From positions 186,001-250,000 of the forward strand of contig JAIVFI010000020.1 of assembly GCA_025558095.1 (NCBI GenBank): DNA of 64,000 nucleotides, read 5' to 3'. The notes beneath the pieces are model-generated. The model did no database searches, was not told where the DNA came from, and was given only the letters and a program-made list of their open reading frames with translations. Source of the stretch: Hyaloraphidium curvatum SAG 235-1. Its lineage: Eukaryota > Fungi > Monoblepharomycota. Below are positions 227-10,068 of the stretch, piece after piece. Position 1 is the first letter of the stretch. Every line of letters begins with the position of its first letter. Made by a program: the position numbers and the translations under genes.

Positions 227-1903
227 TCAAAGCCGCCAAAAATACAAGAGAGTGACAAAGGCTACAGAAATCGAGCTCCAAGAAGGCGTCCGTGCGTGCG
301 CCGAGGCGAGCTTGCGCCGGCCGTCGGCCTCGCTCCACGATTCGATGGTGAAGAGCTGCCCGACCGCCTCGACCAGCTCCTCTTCGGTCCGATCGCCCCG
401 CTGCGCCGTCCCCACGAACGCTGCCTGCCGGCCCCAGATCCTCACCGCGTACCTCGAGCTGCTGGGCAGCCCGCTGGGCACCTTCCAGGCCGCCTCCAGC
501 CTGGTGTTTTCGACGCCGGCCTCGATCGTCGCCACAAGGGTGGATGCGAGATCGTAGCAATGCAGCTCGACGGTGTAAGACTCCAGCACGGCGTTTCTCA
601 CGGTCCATTCCACGCTCGCGGGGAGGGATTTGGTCCATTTGTCTTCGGAAGATGGACCGCGGATGAGGATGAGGGGGTTCCGGAAAGAGGCCGAGGGCCA
701 GGGGTTCGCGGTGCACGCCCAGAGGAGGCGGGAGGTGCCGTCGGCGGGCGATCCGTCACGGCGATGTAGAGGAAAGCCCCAGATGCGGAGAAAGTGGAAG
801 GTTCCGGCTTCGAGGTCCGGAGGAAGCGGGATCGAGGCGGAGGTGCGCGTCATTGGCTGATCCCGCGCAAGGGGAATGCCGAGGAAGCAAGGTGCGGAAG
901 CGTTGGAGCAATGGATATCCAGGTTCCACGAAGAGAGTGGGGTGCCTCGGTAGCTGAAGGAAACATGGAGTTCCGCACCCGGGATGAGCTCGTTGGACGG
1001 TGACGGGGACTGGAGGCGGAAGCTCGATGTCGACGGCGGCCGGGAAATGCAAAAAGGGTCGCTGGTGGCATTGACAAGCTGGTCCGGCACTCCAGTCCTC
1101 TCGAAGTCCTGCTCAGACATTCCGCTGACCCGATAGACGTAGTGACATCCTTCGGGCAGGGTGAACGGAATGCTCCAGTGCACCTCTGTCGTTCCCGGGC
1201 TTTGGTTTTCGGCAACCAAGATCCTCTGCAGATCAGTCTCGCTTTGGCTACCGGAAATCTGCCCGCGCGAAACCGGCCTGAGGTCCAGCAGTTCGACCGT
1301 CAAGGGCAGCAGGGCGCCCCAACCCGCCGCATCGAGTTCGACCCGGGCAACGGAGCCGGCGACGACCGGTCGCTCGGGAGCCGCCACCGAGAGGCCGCCA
1401 ATGGCAAAGTACTGCTCGCTGAGCGCGAACCGCGGTTTCGAGCCGTTCCCGGGGAAGGCAAGCAGCCGAAGGTAGTAGACCTTGGCGGGCTCCAAGTGGG
1501 GGACTGTCCACAGGAACGAGTCCGAATCCCCGGGCAGCCCGTTGGCGACACGAACCAGCGGGCGAGATTTGTTTGCCGCCGAAAAGAGGTCCAGCTGGAA
1601 CGACGCCGCGGAAAGAAAGGGCGGCGCCGCCCAACGGACCTCGGCGGCGGCACCGGCAAAGAGCACCGCGTCCGCCGGCGGCGCCAGCACAGAGAGCTCG
1701 TGCACCGGTGGCCGCATGCGAATCTGAGAGTCATGTTTCCTACCGGGCGCCGGCCGCAGAGGGTCCACCGCCTCGGCCGGGTACAGATGCGCTGCGACGG
1801 AGCGGGCGACGCGCACGGCTGTCCGCTCGGCCCCGCCGCCCGAGTAGAAGGCCCATGCCGCGACGCAGAGCAGGAGCACAAAGATTCTGAACGAATTCAG
1901 CAT
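227..1903 (-). CDS. Secreted, probably GPI-anchored protein with about four tandem Ig-like (Kre9/Knh1 N-terminal / Ser-Thr-rich GPI family-like) domains
   Basis: Signal peptide MLNSFRIFVLLLCVAAWA from ATG 1903. Repeated units of the form P...G....V.W ... L.L ... W.VP..L.....Y..R. Hydrophobic C-terminus ISVAFVTLLYFWRL. Confidence 0.7.
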   Translation of the reverse strand: MLNSFRIFVLLLCVAAWAFYSGGGAERTAVRVARSVAAHLYPAEAVDPLRPAPGRKHDSQIRMRPPVHELSVLAPPADAVLFAGAAAEVRWAAPPFLSAASFQLDLFSAANKSRPLVRVANGLPGDSDSFLWTVPHLEPAKVYYLRLLAFPGNGSKPRFALSEQYFAIGGLSVAAPERPVVAGSVARVELDAAGWGALLPLTVELLDLRPVSRGQISGSQSETDLQRILVAENQSPGTTEVHWSIPFTLPEGCHYVYRVSGMSEQDFERTGVPDQLVNATSDPFCISRPPSTSSFRLQSPSPSNELIPGAELHVSFSYRGTPLSSWNLDIHCSNASAPCFLGIPLARDQPMTRTSASIPLPPDLEAGTFHFLRIWGFPLHRRDGSPADGTSRLLWACTANPWPSASFRNPLILIRGPSSEDKWTKSLPASVEWTVRNAVLESYTVELHCYDLASTLVATIEAGVENTRLEAAWKVPSGLPSSSRYAVRIWGRQAAFVGTAQRGDRTEEELVEAVGQLFTIESWSEADGRRKLASAHARTPSWSSISVAFVTLLYFWRL

Positions 1904-2042
1904 GGTCGCTGGTCGGAGAAGGTGACAGAGGGGGAGGAGCTCATCCGGAATTCGAGGCCGTTGGCCGGTTCGTAGTCCATTCTTACACAAGCAAATCCCA
2001 CAGAAGTACGATATCCCACGCTCGCATACTACACGCGATCTA

Positions 2043-4211
2043 TCATTGAAGAGCGTTGAATGCAGCTTGAATAGATTTCTCTTTCGAAATTGGGTTAATC
2101 ATCGACAAGGAGACCTCATATACGTGCAGCAGGTCATGAAGCTTGGGAGTGGTTGCCTGGTCTCCAAGCTTTTCCGCCTTCAGAATAGCGTTAAGGTTGC
2201 TCGAAAACTGCGTCGCAAATAGTTCCTCTTTGTATATGGTCTGGCTGTTTGTCTCGTCTGGTTTCATGTATGAGTCTACCAGCTCGGCAGCAGCAACCGC
2301 CAGGATATCCCGTGCAGGCCCATTGTCCGAGATCCTGATGATCGCATTCGATAAGGTGACTGGAGGAGCATCTGAAGGTCGCTTCTTCAAAACGCGGCGA
2401 ATGAAGTCAACGAATATGAAGTAGAATAGGAAGCGAGACTGCCGCCGCCACGAGTATTGTGATCCTCTGCCAAACTTCGTCCGATCATCCTCCGAAATCC
2501 CTTGCACCTTGTAAGCAGCGTAAAGATCGTTAGCATCGATGGGGTTTGGTCCTTCAGTGACACGCTGGAAGACTGGTCCGCCTGGTGCAAAGGTCCTTGT
2601 TTGCCCTCTGAAAGCCAGACCAGGCTGGGAAAGCCATCCAGCCGTATAAACCTTAATGAGGTCGTAGAGATTGCAAAACTGCTTGAACTGTTGTGAATCA
2701 GGCTTCTGGGCCTGCAAAGCGCGTTGGGAGTCCCATCCGCCACGTTGAACTTCCAAGAACACGCCATGTGCAGCCATAGCCTCCGCCCAGACGTCCCGTC
2801 GTTCCACAAGGGCAAGAAAGTCTTTCTCCCGGACCGCATTCTGGGAATTGGTATACCGAGTAATGTTCATAACCTCCTCCCCATTCAACGGGTCGACCTT
2901 GGCAATCTTGACGATGATGTTTCCTTTGTCCAACCTGGTCTTCCACTCAGCTATAGAAGGAGGATCCTCACCGGCTCCGCTCTTCAAGCGAGGAACGCAG
3001 ACGTCATAAATGGTACGTGTGGTCTGACATCCATTGACCACGTATGGGTCAGACAGAATCACCTTGTCATCGTTGACCGCGTAGTCAACAACGACAATGG
3101 TCACGCCATTGTTGTATAGACCGAAGTTCTCCGGAGCCTCCGCCAACGTTTTCCGCATTCCACTGTTGACCCGCCCCTTGAAAGCCAGGAAACGTCGAAC
3201 GTTCTTGTCGTACAGTTGGTCAAGGTCTCCAGTCATGTCCTTGAAAGCACACAGGAAGTCAAACACGTTGCGCAGTGGAACAACGCCGACGATCTGGTTG
3301 GAAGCTACACCTTCGGAAGCGACAAGATTGCTCCGCCCGACCTTCAGGTCTACTTTGCGCGTGGGAAGAATGAGCTTCCGGGCATGGTCCGCCAGCAGAT
3401 CGTCCCAAATAGTCTTCAGAGACACTTCGATCACCTCAACAATGTTCTTCCTCAATCTCTCCTGGAAAAGCCGTTCCACGTCCGAAAGCCACAGCTTCTC
3501 ATTTGCTCCCATTGGGTCGAGCACCCCGAAGACGACCACGATCTTGTCCAGATCAGTTGCACCCCGAATGAAGTTGCCAATTCGTTCGCGAAAGGATTGA
3601 GCCATATGAGAGAGGTTGCCAGCAAAATGGTGGTCGGGGTCGATGGTGTCAAGCATTTTGCCGGCTTCGGCCAAAATGGAAGGGCGACCCTGGAATGCCG
3701 TGTTGTACTTCCCCTGAATGAGATACCAGGTGTTTCCAACGCGGCGATTTCTTCCAGCGTCGTCCTCTGCAGCACCGGCCACCGGGTCCCTTTCCTGATC
3801 GGCTCCCATCTCAAGCTGCGCAACGTCTATGCCCCCGTCACCAGCTCCTTGGAGATAGATGGTGTCCTCCGAGTCATCGTTGATCTCGAGCCATTGCTTT
3901 GCCAGCTTTATGGCGAACCTGTTGCCCTTGGTGGTTGTTGACGGGTTGTCTCTCTCGACATCTTCAATCCACTTCTGCTTGAACTTTTCGAACGTGAGGT
4001 CGGCCGGATTTCCGGCCTGAGGAATCGGCAAATCGATAGGAGGCGGGGGGTCGATCTGGTCTGCCGCGTTGGCGGGGACCGCGGCCATCTTCGCCGGGCA
4101 GTTCTTGCTCCTATTCGTGTGCCCAAGTGCTTGGTCCAACCAGCCTCTACTCTTGCAGGCCGTACAAGACGGTTGGCTCCGCTGCTTCTTCGATGGCGGT
4201 GGATCCCCCAT
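2043..4211 (-). CDS. AIPR-family (abortive infection phage resistance) protein with N-terminal PD-(D/E)xK-like nuclease module and added NLS-like motif plus CCHC zinc knuckle
   Basis: AIPR motifs LYDKNVRRFL, PENFGLYNNGVTIV, PYVVNGCQTTRTI and ITRYTNSQNAVREKDF. Nuclease-like GAGDGGID...WYLIQGKY. First ATG at 4211 gives MGDPPPSKKQR-SQPS-CTAC-x11-H-x6-CP. Single intronless ORF. Confidence 0.88.
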   Translation of the reverse strand: MGDPPPSKKQRSQPSCTACKSRGWLDQALGHTNRSKNCPAKMAAVPANAADQIDPPPPIDLPIPQAGNPADLTFEKFKQKWIEDVERDNPSTTTKGNRFAIKLAKQWLEINDDSEDTIYLQGAGDGGIDVAQLEMGADQERDPVAGAAEDDAGRNRRVGNTWYLIQGKYNTAFQGRPSILAEAGKMLDTIDPDHHFAGNLSHMAQSFRERIGNFIRGATDLDKIVVVFGVLDPMGANEKLWLSDVERLFQERLRKNIVEVIEVSLKTIWDDLLADHARKLILPTRKVDLKVGRSNLVASEGVASNQIVGVVPLRNVFDFLCAFKDMTGDLDQLYDKNVRRFLAFKGRVNSGMRKTLAEAPENFGLYNNGVTIVVVDYAVNDDKVILSDPYVVNGCQTTRTIYDVCVPRLKSGAGEDPPSIAEWKTRLDKGNIIVKIAKVDPLNGEEVMNITRYTNSQNAVREKDFLALVERRDVWAEAMAAHGVFLEVQRGGWDSQRALQAQKPDSQQFKQFCNLYDLIKVYTAGWLSQPGLAFRGQTRTFAPGGPVFQRVTEGPNPIDANDLYAAYKVQGISEDDRTKFGRGSQYSWRRQSRFLFYFIFVDFIRRVLKKRPSDAPPVTLSNAIIRISDNGPARDILAVAAAELVDSYMKPDETNSQTIYKEELFATQFSSNLNAILKAEKLGDQATTPKLHDLLHVYEVSLSMINPISKEKSIQAAFNALQ

Positions 4212-4367
4212 GTTGCGAACTGCAGAGCGCGGGAGAGAAGCGCCGTTAGAGAGACCTACGGTCCACGGCGCCGGCGATCCGCAAGGAGAAGAGCTCACCT
4301 GAAGAAACTTGGTCGGCCGTCAAGGAGCCTGATTGCGTTCGTGCGGTCCTGTTTCGCGTGGTGTGCG

Positions 4368-4405
4368 CCACTTTCAGGGACTGAGGGATACCCACTTTCA
4401 GGGAC
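4368..4405. repeat. 14-bp direct repeat CCACTTTCAGGGAC (two copies, 24-bp period) upstream of AIPR
   Basis: Exact copies at 4368-4381 and 4392-4405 in the short intergenic gap 5' of the AIPR ATG. Confidence 0.75.
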
Positions 4406-4536
4406 CGACGTCGGGACACGCAGGTGAACAAGTCTATCCTATGGCGCACACCTTCATCTTCTCGTTCCTAGCTGCCCGACACAGAGGGCAGCACACGCCC
4501 TCGCAACGTCCTTTCGCAATAACGTCGTACAATTCA

Positions 4537-6167
4537 TCACAACATACTCAAGCCTGTGAAGCCCGAAACCAGTCCGATCGCCACCGATCCCATCCAAACC
4601 GCCAAGCTCCCCGCTCCCGAAGGCCTCGACGTGGTCGGCGAAGCCGTCGCCGTCGTCGGCGACGGGGTCCCCGTCGTCGCGGCCCCGGTGGTCGACGCCC
4701 CGCCCGTCGCGGTGGGCACCACGGGCGGCTGCGTCGCCAGCATCTCCTTGGCAGCCCTCACGCCCGATCCCAGCGCGCCGTGCACGAGCGCGGGGAAGGT
4801 GCGGTTGGTGTGCTCCCCGGCAAAGAACAGCCATCCGTCGACGGGCTGGCCGAGGGTGCCGTACATGGTCGGATTGGAGCCCACGCCGAGGTGCGAGTAG
4901 GAACCGCGGCTCCAAGGGTCGTTGCGCCAGCGCGTGACACGCACACGGATTTGGTCTGCGGCGGGTAGCGTGTCGTCGGGGAAGGCGGAGCGAAGAGCCG
5001 AGAGGGCGTCGGCTGCGACTTCGGCGTCGGTCCTGTTTTCAGCTTGTTCCGCGAAGCTGCCCGAGATGAGGCAGACGAGCGAGTTGGCCGTGGGGACCAC
5101 GCGGCGGTAGTTGAGCCACTCGTAGAACTTTCGCGTCTCGCCGGCGACGTCGGTAGTGTAGAGCCTGAAGACGTCGCGGTCCCGGATGGCTGCGGGGACG
5201 GCACTGCCGGCAGGGAAGTCGAGCACGACCTTGTCCAGCACGCCGTAGCCCATCTTGGTGATTGCGTTGGTCTTCGCCGAGGACAAGGGCGGGTTAAAGG
5301 TGATGTTGCCTGCCTTGAGCATGCCGAGCGGGATCGTGACGAGGATCTGGTGGCACTCGACCTGTTCGCCCGCGGCGGTGGTGATTGTCGGCACGCCGTT
5401 CGCGAGCGTGACGGCCGAGATCGGGGTCGAGAGCGAGATGTTGAGGCGCGAGACCATGCCGTTAAAGAGGTTCACGTAGCCGTTGCGGAAGATGAGCGCC
5501 TCCCCGCGCTCCTCGGCTTCGATGCCAAAGTACTTGGCAGACAGCCAATCCAGGTCCACGGCGTACTCGTTGCCGACGGCGGCAGTGGCCTGCCAGAAGA
5601 CGTCGTTGCGGCGCGTCGCCGTCGCGCCGGTAAGGATCGAATCCAGCTGTGCCTGCAGGGAAATGTCCGTGGCCTCGGTGAGCGCCGGCTGCCGCTCGTA
5701 AACCTGGGCAATGGCCGCATTGTACTGCTGAGTGATCCGCGTAACGGTCGCCTCGGGAACGGGGGCGCCCGTGGCCATGTCCATGGTCTGGGTGCCCTCG
5801 AAGTCGGTCGCCACGGTCTGCACGGAGCTGTTTTCGCGCAGCAGGCTCAGCAGCGGGTTCCTCGGGTACGCACCCTGCGAAATGGACGTCAGATTGATCA
5901 CCGTCGCGAAAGAGTGCCCACGCGAACCTGGATCCAGCCGGCACCGAGGTCGATGTAGTACCCGAGCGACGTATCGCTCCACACGCGGCCGCCGACGCGG
6001 TCGCGCGCCTCGAACACGCGGACGGGACGGTCGCCGCCGTTGGAGACGAGGTAGTCGCCGGCAGAGAGACCCGCGACGCCCGCGCCCACGATGCAGCGCG
6101 GCAGTGCTTGAGCATAGGCGGAAGGCAGCGCGAGAAGGAGCGCCAGGAGCGGCGAGAGGCGCGCCAT
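4537..6167 (-). CDS. Secreted/GPI-anchored flavin-containing amine oxidase (polyamine oxidase/LSD1-AOD-like), two exons
   Basis: Signal peptide MARLSPLLALLLALPSAYA. FAD motifs IVGAGVAGLSA, FEARDRVGGRV and DLGAGWIQ|GAYPRNPL (intron 5875-5927, GT..AG). Also TRWRNDPWSRGSYS, FFAGEHT and VHGALGSGVRAA. Thr-rich stalk and hydrophobic tail. Confidence 0.88.
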
Positions 6168-6667
6168 CGCGAGATGCAGGCTTGTGCGGTCACTCAGTGT
6201 GCACTTGAAGGAAGCTTCTGCCCTTTCCGCACGAGATTGGCGGCGCGTGGTGGCCGAAGATGAAGGTTGGCACCGCCCGGCCGATTTGCTGTGCCGAGCG
6301 GGACCTCGATGGGTCCGACGCAACGGCGCACTCGGGTCGCTCACAGCAAGCGGAGCAGCTAAAAGAAGGCAGAAAATGGAAGTCGGATGTTGGATGGTTG
6401 AATGCGGGCAGGAACCGGGGGATCCGCTGCTTGACTACACTAATTGGGGCCGGTTACGCAACAATCGAGCCGCAACAATTCTTGAACGGAAGGGCACTAC
6501 TTGTAGCTCAATGCTCTTGCTCGGGCTCTAAAGTACCTGTGAATCGCGACAGAGTGCGCCTGTCATAACTGCGAAAGCCTTTCTTGCCTTGCATGCAGTG
6601 AAGTCTGTACGTTACACACAGTTTTCAGTCTTCGACCGGAGCTGTTCGAGCTCTTCCTGGTCCGGCT

Positions 6668-8831: not shown

Positions 8832-10068
8832 TCAGATCGCGTCCTCGATCTCGTGCTCTTCGTCACCGCCGCGCAAACACTTCACCCAGTCGTCGCGCCA
8901 TTCGTCGTGATCGAACACGGTGACGCTGTCCCAAACCTTGGCCCACTCATTGCACTCCCTGATGAATGCCCCCTTGGCATAGCTCCAATCACTCTCCTCG
9001 TCCATCCATTCCAACACGTGCGAGGAGCTCAAAGCGCCGCCCGGATAAATCAAAACATCCCAGAAAGGTTCGATGTAGATGTCGGTCTCTCCGACCGCCG
9101 CCTCAATGGCATCGAACGCATCCAGCGGCAGCTCTCCGAGAAAGCACTCCAGAAGGTCGACCCTCTTCAGTCCTTTCCACTCGCAGCCGGCCATGATCGA
9201 TGTCTGTACCGAATGAAGAAACAGGGTCTCAAGAGCAGGAAAGGCGGCCCGAATGCGGCGCACATCGTTGGGTTTGGGGGCCTCGGCGGCGGATTCGAAG
9301 CACGTAACCTCGAGCATACGAACGTTTTCGAAAACGTACGCAGTCCAGCCATCGAGCTCGCCGGTGTTGATGGTAAGGCGATGGAGGTTGGCCGCAACGG
9401 CAGAAAAAGCCTGGATCTCGCGGGGCCACTTCAGGTTGCTTCGGGCCCAGTGGCTGAATTCGACCGTAGACTGTAATTCGAGATCCTTGAAAGTGCCGCC
9501 GAGCTTATCGAGGTGCTGTACCAGAGTCCTCTCTGTCTGCATTGTGTTGATCCTTATCCCGTAGAAAACGTACGAGACGGAAACGCGCTCTAACGCATTT
9601 GCCGTGTCGATACCGCGGAGAAAGTCCGAGAAGCCGGCGAAGCTGACAATCTCAATTTTGAGGCTCACGAGGACGGGCCGACGCCGCGCAGGAGAGCTTC
9701 GAGGAAAGGGTCCGCCGAGCCGATTTCGATGCTGAGTTCCAAAACGTGCTGCAGCTTGTTCAGCTTCAGCTCGTCCGACAGAAGCCCTCGTCACGTGGCC
9801 GAAGGCTTCCCGGGGTGCGGCACGATGTGGAGCTTCCGAACCACAACAGGCGGCGGCACGTCGAAAGCAGCTTGAGAAGCGACTTCTTCTTGCCTCCTTC
9901 ATCATTGTCGCAGAGCACTCGTTCCATGATGAGCAGGAGCACTTCGGGCGGCAGACTCGCGAGCGAGAGGTCCTCGGGGTTTTCGTCGGGGGCGAGCCGT
10001 CCGCGCAGCTGCAGGTCCGAATCGGCCGCGGGGTCCACCGAGGCCGTTCGTCCGCTTCGCTGGGTCAT
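8832..10068 (-). CDS. F-box-like protein with LRR-like C-terminal region (frame change near 9770-9840: intron or frameshift)
   Basis: LASLPPEVLLLIMERVL...LLKLLSTCRRL is an F-box-like N-terminus. The downstream frame has LRR-like LERVSV, LHRLTI, FPALETLFL and LKRVDL. Confidence 0.6.

Follow-up and report, generated by a model that had tools for sequence, protein, structure and literature searches.

How does a gene of a bacterial defence family come to lie among the genes of a fungus, and what might it do there? We addressed this question in a window of 64,000 nucleotides (the whole stretch of DNA analysed) from the genome (31.9 Mb, 55 contigs) of the monoblepharid fungus Hyaloraphidium curvatum. 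The gene lies on the minus strand and was read from an ATG at 4211 to a TGA at 2043-2045 as a frame of 722 amino acids with no internal stop codon. The Pfam profile AIPR (PF10592) matched residues 335-539 with 135.7 bits (E=3.5e-39), the curated cut-off being 25 bits, which bears out the AIPR membership proposed in a preliminary description. The PADLOC profile for AbiU (positions 10-534 of 537) matched residues 82-673 almost end to end (E=2.9e-31, 107 bits, a family-level match), and querying a language-model atlas with the protein returned AIPR clusters only, 86-100% of them bacterial.

Transcript, composition and neighbours

In one public run, compared over positions 600-6400 of the window, a single RNA-type contig of 2331 nt covered positions 1975-4362 and skipped 4220-4298. 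The run is listed as RNA by guess only, and its RNA status is supported by two canonical GT-AG joints; the intron of the neighbouring amine oxidase gene was removed in the same run as well. The AIPR gene is thus transcribed and spliced in Hyaloraphidium curvatum, in keeping with its supposed residence in an early-diverging fungus. The frame had been described as intact and intronless. It is indeed intact, full-length and free of introns in its coding part, but the transcript carries an intron in the 5' UTR, so that "intronless" has to be corrected to "without coding introns". The features of the gene are collected in Table 1. Directly upstream of the first exon, a 17-nt direct repeat (4368-4408, 94% identical, spacing 24) was observed, possibly a promoter element or a product of chance.

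Table 1. Features of the AIPR gene and its product in the window
Feature	Position	Strand	Basis
First exon, non-coding and without ATG; at 4362 the contig runs into library adapter	4299..4362	-	RNA-type contig
79-nt GT-AG spliceosomal intron in 5' UTR, ending 8 nt before ATG	4220..4298	-	RNA-type contig joins 4219 and 4299
AbiU1/AIPR-family coding sequence, 722 aa, without coding introns	2043..4211	-	frame reading and family profile matches
Basic proline patch, aa 4-11 (PPPSKKQR)	4179..4202	-	sequence and alignment; absent from bacterial relatives
CCHC zinc knuckle, aa 16-38 (C16, C19, H31, C38)	4098..4166	-	zf-CCHC_6 and motif scan
Pro/Ala-rich disordered linker, aa 39-70	4002..4097	-	pLDDT under 50
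PD-(D/E)xK restriction-endonuclease fold, aa 71-279 (model domain about aa 62-279)	3375..4001	-	structural matches
AIPR core, aa 301-539: ParB/Srx-like domain (about aa 301-460), then EVQRG segment	2595..3311	-	PF10592 and structural matches
C-terminal helical region, aa 540-722	2046..2594	-	model; no Pfam match
3' UTR	1975..2042	-	covered by same spliced contig as AIPR frame

The gene neighbours are eukaryotic and encode a Kre9/KNH Ig-like protein, an amine oxidase (spliced at 5874-5926) and an ankyrin-kinase. The first of these (227-1990, minus strand) has a product that is secreted or exposed at the surface and carries repeats of the Kre9/KNH Ig-like domain; its start lies about 70 nt or less from the 3' end of the AIPR transcript. 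Neither terminal repeats nor a transposase were found around the window gene; a defence cluster or mobile element was likewise not found, and the neighbours differ at all three eukaryotic loci that carry such a gene (see below). No cognate methyltransferase or partner gene adjoins any of the three.

The GC content of the coding sequence is 0.533, in line with the earlier spot count of about 53%. At fourfold sites GC is 0.56, the lowest among 23 long coding-like frames in the window, while four neighbouring genes reach 0.80-0.91 and a fifth 0.63. A 357-aa ORF with no Pfam match (8832-9905, minus strand) is similarly low at these sites (0.63), and low GC is therefore possibly common in lineage-specific genes here.

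Low GC and a coding sequence free of introns could also mark bacterial contamination or a chimeric assembly. This is practically ruled out: the removal of a spliceosomal intron from the very transcript that carries the AIPR frame excludes a bacterial contaminant, a paralogue with introns lies on a separate contig (C18), a relative is present in an independent eukaryotic assembly, and the N-terminus of the window protein is eukaryote-only. The earlier judgement that contamination was unlikely, based on the location between eukaryotic genes, has thus gained a spliced transcript in its favor.

Domain structure and comparison with known systems

The structure model of the window protein had a mean pLDDT of 72.6 with residues 1-70 disordered; folded alone, the middle part reached 86. 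No relatives of solved structure were found by sequence. In the disordered N-terminus, the basic patch PPPSKKQR is, from its sequence, a possible nuclear localisation signal, and the protein is presumably located in the nucleus. The match of zf-CCHC_6 to the adjoining knuckle (E=0.00065) is under the curated cut-off; the motif scan detected the knuckle in 3/3 eukaryotic copies and in 0/347 other proteins compared. A search of the host genome for its source gave only self matches.

Compared with solved structures, the N-terminal domain matched the catalytic domain of FokI at Z 9.7 (rmsd 5.1, 163 aligned), the sole match at Z 8 or more, followed by AspBHI (6.5), MspJI (6.4) and LlaBIII (6.2), and the top 50 structural matches were mostly PD-(D/E)xK nucleases. 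The PD-(D/E)xK-like module postulated in the preliminary description was thus recovered in this comparison. A Foldseek search gave nothing significant. The active-site residues are D125 and D129 in GDGGID and Q166 and K168 in QGKY (a Mrr-like Q-x-K motif); all four are kept in 3/3 eukaryotic copies and in 76-79 of 85 bacterial rows (about 90%). In the model, the domain has a PD-(D/E)xK fold with its catalytic residues, and nuclease activity is predicted.

All motifs of the AIPR core (NxR, NNG, NGCQT, TNxQN, ExQRG) are present in the window protein and kept in all three eukaryotic copies. NVRRFL occupies residues 337-342, FGLYNNG 363-369, VNGCQT 392-397 and NSQNAV 455-460, so that this motif set is present as originally reported, and so is GDGGID...QGKY. 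The top eight structural matches of the middle part, led by SspE and BrxU, all belong to the ParB/Srx superfamily (SspE, BrxU, ParB-N, PadC, KorB, sulfiredoxin and a DndBCDE-DndI chain) and agree with the proposed ParB/Srx-like nature of this domain; the scores are modest (Z 3.6-5.3 in the top eight, with a ParB-like ceiling of 5.7). The C-terminal helical region of the model may be a DNA-recognition or oligomerisation part.

Earlier work assigned a ParB-like character to AIPR/AbiU1 and noted its association with restriction-modification loci (PMC3632139, PMC3506569, PMC2292703). The window protein is a true member of this family (AbiU1 or AbiUi/AIPR, PF10592, PADLOC PDLC02357), not of GmrSD/SspE or MzaE, and follows the same plan of a FokI-like nuclease fold plus an AIPR core. 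In Lactococcus, a single gene is sufficient: AbiUi alone confers a modest resistance, cutting plaquing 10- to 100-fold and delaying phage transcription, AbiU2 is dispensable for the defence, and the AbiUi model resembles FokI (PMC13064643). Unlike AbiU1, the window gene has a eukaryotic host, a spliced transcript and an extra basic patch and zinc knuckle, and ordinary eukaryotic genes stand beside it instead of AbiU2 (HEPN) or a restriction-modification locus. The protein is distant from lactococcal AbiU and falls within an uncharacterised 630-aa subfamily.

In BrxU and SspE, the nuclease is gated by a ParB-like (DUF262) NTPase, and its action on DNA depends on how that DNA is modified (PMC10952713). 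As in the window protein, nuclease and ParB/Srx-like domain are parts of the same polypeptide in the type IV restriction enzymes GmrSD/BrxU and in SspE (DUF262 + DUF1524); however, their nuclease is a C-terminal HNH instead of an N-terminal PD-(D/E)xK, and their motif is DGQQR where the window protein has NGCQT. By analogy, the window protein may work like GmrSD/SspE without being a member. Mrr-like or modification-dependent endonucleases (MspJI, AspBHI, the LlaBIII nuclease domain) share the PD-(D/E)xK fold and the D...QxK pattern, but the window protein has no SRA methyl-cytosine reader. Pfam searches of the protein gave no HNH, GmrSD (including GmrSD_N) or Mrr_cat match. MzaE of the MZA system (NF041935) has a homologous AIPR core (E=2.4e-13), yet the window protein scored 49.5 bits against an equivalog cut-off of 1050, and no other MZA genes adjoin it.

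Eukaryotic copies, bacterial origin and selection

Residues 95-720 of the window protein are up to 45% identical, over about 630 residues, to bacterial AIPR proteins. The closest bacterial group consists of uncharacterised AIPR proteins of about 630 aa, spread over many phyla (Polyangiaceae, Dehalococcoidia, Alphaproteobacteria, cyanobacteria and others). Among 79 bacterial loci, these relatives had no fixed partner gene, and a single gene can therefore be a complete unit. A methyltransferase-like motif occurred within 6 kb at 14/79 loci, a count with no background for comparison, and three checked members adjoin methyltransferase, integrase or BREX genes.

A second copy in Hyaloraphidium curvatum, 37% identical to the window copy, lies on contig C18 (GenBank KAI9020398.1). 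Read exon by exon, it has three coding exons and two coding introns with in-frame GT-AG junctions, and its fourfold-site GC (0.79-0.84) is fully host-like. The GenBank protein (879 aa; L006:6262-9400 on C18) skips the AIPR stop and joins a downstream thioesterase-like gene (PF03061), and is probably a fused gene model; the whole C18 protein was taken as residues 1-727 of the public record (P0128:1-727). The third copy (P0122) was found on a 102-kb eukaryotic contig of run SRR26194948, where its neighbours include split genes for P450, peroxidase and FtsJ; its identity is 55% with the C18 copy and 37% with the window copy. Since its neighbours match Hyaloraphidium curvatum genes at 56-90%, we infer that its host is a related fungus. 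The called start of this copy (L013:10001-10035) probably lies inside a 5'-UTR intron (GT about 9948, AG about 10032), and, from the sequence, translation likely begins at the following ATG.

No further eukaryotic sequence stood at the top of 1370 homologue matches. More eukaryotic copies were found neither among 1.8 billion representatives nor by an eukaryote-built profile search or in metagenome contigs, searches that were word- or length-limited and may miss split or diverged genes. Billions of proteins thus yielded three eukaryotic copies, from two organisms. As the searches gave one paralogue and just one other eukaryote, fungi showed no broad vertical inheritance of the gene, in keeping with the earlier expectation.

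The three eukaryotic proteins formed one clade inside bacterial diversity, with support of 99 (FastTree, 88 rows) and 97/90 (LG+C20, 34 rows). The gene is of bacterial origin and was acquired by horizontal transfer, as the preliminary description had held: it is nested in bacterial diversity, resident in the host genome and patchy in eukaryotes. All three copies lack one residue near aa 480, as do 2% of bacteria, and have insertions near aa 535 and 657; these indels are nearly absent from 85 bacterial rows. They share 12 rare residues, compared with at most 8 (median 2) for bacterial rows, and in each a 5'-UTR intron ends 1-8 nt before the start, as shown for the window copy and predicted from sequence for the others. 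From the clade, the shared indels, the shared knuckle and the 5'-UTR intron, a single old transfer followed by duplication probably lies behind all three.

A recent transfer, as low GC might suggest, is unsupported, considering the 45% identity of the best bacterial relative, the long branch, the older paralogue with host-like GC and the absence of a CpG depletion that would point to decay through methylation (CpG o/e of the window copy 0.93). The low GC and the missing coding introns of the window copy would nevertheless be explained if it were younger than the C18 lineage and had come separately, by a second bacterial transfer or by way of a DNA virus or another eukaryote. Its identity with bacterial proteins (45%) exceeds that with its paralogue (37%), its fourfold-site GC of 0.56 differs from the 0.79-0.84 of C18, and an AU test did not reject its grouping with the best bacterial matches (p=0.175, at a log-likelihood 12 lower); an ORF in a virus-like island on contig C23 also opens with a similar basic patch and knuckle (weak, pairwise E=0.003). 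However, the supported eukaryotic clade, the indels and knuckle held in common and the 5'-UTR intron at the same place in all three copies (two of them predicted) argue against such an arrival, as do the lack of terminal repeats and transposase and the finding of only three matches in viral contigs, all bacterial-type. We consider it unlikely. A redundant paralogue drifting to loss under relaxed selection is more improbable still. Its branch is the longest of the eukaryotic ones (1.54, the others having 0.5-0.6 plus a 1.1 stem; all three are long), its fourfold-site GC is the lowest in the window, and no orthologue was found in the second organism; the frame is nevertheless full-length, the transcript is spliced, and every motif residue is retained despite saturated synonymous divergence, in the eukaryotic copy that is nearest to the bacterial consensus. 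Purifying selection could be estimated for the other pair, with dN/dS of about 0.14-0.28 between the C18 and SRR26194948 copies at dS near saturation; dS of the window copy is saturated. The description of the gene as still intact fits these data.

Proposed function and viral setting

The explanation that we favor, with a probability of about one half, is a bacterial defence gene that entered once, gained a eukaryotic front end, was duplicated and acts as a nucleotide-gated DNase against foreign DNA. A single-gene AbiU1/AIPR defence protein would have entered the ancestor of the monoblepharid fungus and acquired the 5'-UTR intron, the basic patch and the zinc knuckle, and the duplicated gene would have been kept under selection. 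Its ParB-like AIPR core would bind and hydrolyse nucleotide and so serve as a switch, holding the PD-(D/E)xK domain off on host chromatin until non-self DNA is met; the trigger might be an unusual modification, or DNA of a virus or mobile element that is free or being replicated. The nuclease would then nick or cut this DNA, by which the invader would be slowed or the cell arrested, while patch and knuckle might give nuclear entry and contact with nucleic acid or protein. Every step beyond the fold assignment is one that we infer. Judged from the model, the window protein is probably an NTPase-gated DNase, and for a defence role against foreign DNA, drawn by analogy with AbiU, GmrSD and SspE, we see roughly even odds.

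A stand-alone nucleotide-gated DNase is favored because AbiUi acts alone, BrxU and SspE pair a ParB-like NTPase with a nuclease, and the bacterial subfamily has no fixed partner. The catalytic-motif residues kept in all three copies after long divergence and the dN/dS of about 0.14-0.28 between the other two copies count for the explanation as a whole. Against the overall explanation count the family-level AbiU match, the MzaE score below cut-off, the modest ParB-like Z, the missing adjoining partner and the AU result (p=0.175), and also that no activity of any AIPR protein was reported in the literature found.

A gene of the same origin could instead have been domesticated for nuclear housekeeping with no link to infection, such as DNA repair or recombination, control of rDNA or transposons, or nucleic-acid turnover. 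Long retention under purifying selection, the host-like GC of the C18 copy, steady transcription in an apparently uninfected culture and the added knuckle and basic patch would all suit such a role, for which sulfiredoxin, a ParB-fold gene turned to housekeeping, offers a precedent (from the references of PMC4619093). We nevertheless regard this as rather unlikely, because the very narrow distribution, the fast divergence of the paralogues (37% identity) and a gene order that is not conserved fit conflict genes better than housekeeping genes. Slightly less likely again is a suicide or dormancy effector, acting in abortive infection or non-self recognition, whose nuclease would hit host nucleic acid and stop the cell. 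The name of the family refers to abortive infection, AbiU is counted among Abi-like systems, and in Dictyostelium an antiphage effector acquired by transfer, TirC, has been retooled for cell death (PMC13142454); however, the closest solved architectures, BrxU and SspE, target invader DNA, and cell killing by AbiU is not established in the review of the system (PMC13064643).

A threat for a DNase directed at foreign DNA is plausible. Zoosporic fungi harbour persistent giant viruses, and capsid genes are present in two genomes of Monoblepharidomycota (PMC13533422); the Hyaloraphidium curvatum genome, for its part, holds the island on C23. This 18-kb low-GC stretch (about 59-77 kb; mostly 0.41-0.47, partly 0.52-0.59, against a background of 0.63-0.76) carries genes for a D5-like primase-helicase, an N6/N4 DNA methyltransferase, a SET domain, TspO and DUF2177, and looks like an endogenous DNA virus or virus-like element. 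No capsid gene was identified in the island, and a search of the genome for an NCLDV capsid gave no match, its control being uninformative. The sole tie between AIPR gene and island is the weakly similar knuckle, in a low-complexity ORF (L137:3407-4459, minus strand) whose N-terminus combines a basic proline patch with a CCHC knuckle in the style of the AIPR graft. It is conceivable, though on balance doubtful, that monoblepharid fungi run a restriction-like nuclear immune enzyme, a nucleotide-gated AIPR endonuclease with nuclear signal and knuckle that would discriminate viral or mobile from host DNA without a partner methyltransferase and limit giant viruses or virus-like elements.

The preliminary description had spoken of a candidate undescribed eukaryotic immune system. 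This is a hypothesis of a kind that has precedents in other antiphage families: that eukaryotes have acquired and domesticated antiphage genes is established for TirBCD of Dictyostelium (PMC13142454), Tiamat in fungi and others (10.64898/2026.09.30.754977) and CD-NTase, STING and viperin (PMC10732462), and AIPR is a new case. Like them, AIPR is a lone effector without an operon, kept in a narrow eukaryotic lineage; they are other families, backed by biochemical or genetic tests, whereas the role of AIPR is predicted. AIPR is absent from the Tiamat preprint, and the literature searched, with incomplete coverage, held no case of a eukaryotic AIPR, GenBank merely auto-labelling the paralogue. What is new is a eukaryote-adapted AIPR with a new N-terminal module, in a common prokaryotic defence family of which no eukaryotic member was described in that literature. 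If the favored explanation is true, the intact copy would exemplify something rare, a eukaryote that tolerates a DNase of the restriction type, and this in fungi whose lineage is host to giant viruses. The three diverged copies and their close bacterial relatives form a ready test set for AIPR function, and the same set informs the domestication of a lone antiphage gene through intron gain, targeting signal, knuckle and duplication.

Outside the window, no Mrr gene was found in the Hyaloraphidium curvatum genome. Two GmrSD_N/DUF262 genes with DGQQR motifs (C11:720346-720606 and C32:468898-469113) represent further ParB-like defence-type domains. Two C5 DNA methyltransferase-like frames, related to each other and each about 460 aa long, lie 25 kb apart (C12:523184-524251 and C12:548189-549250), and several additional C5 methyltransferase matches were observed in the genome.
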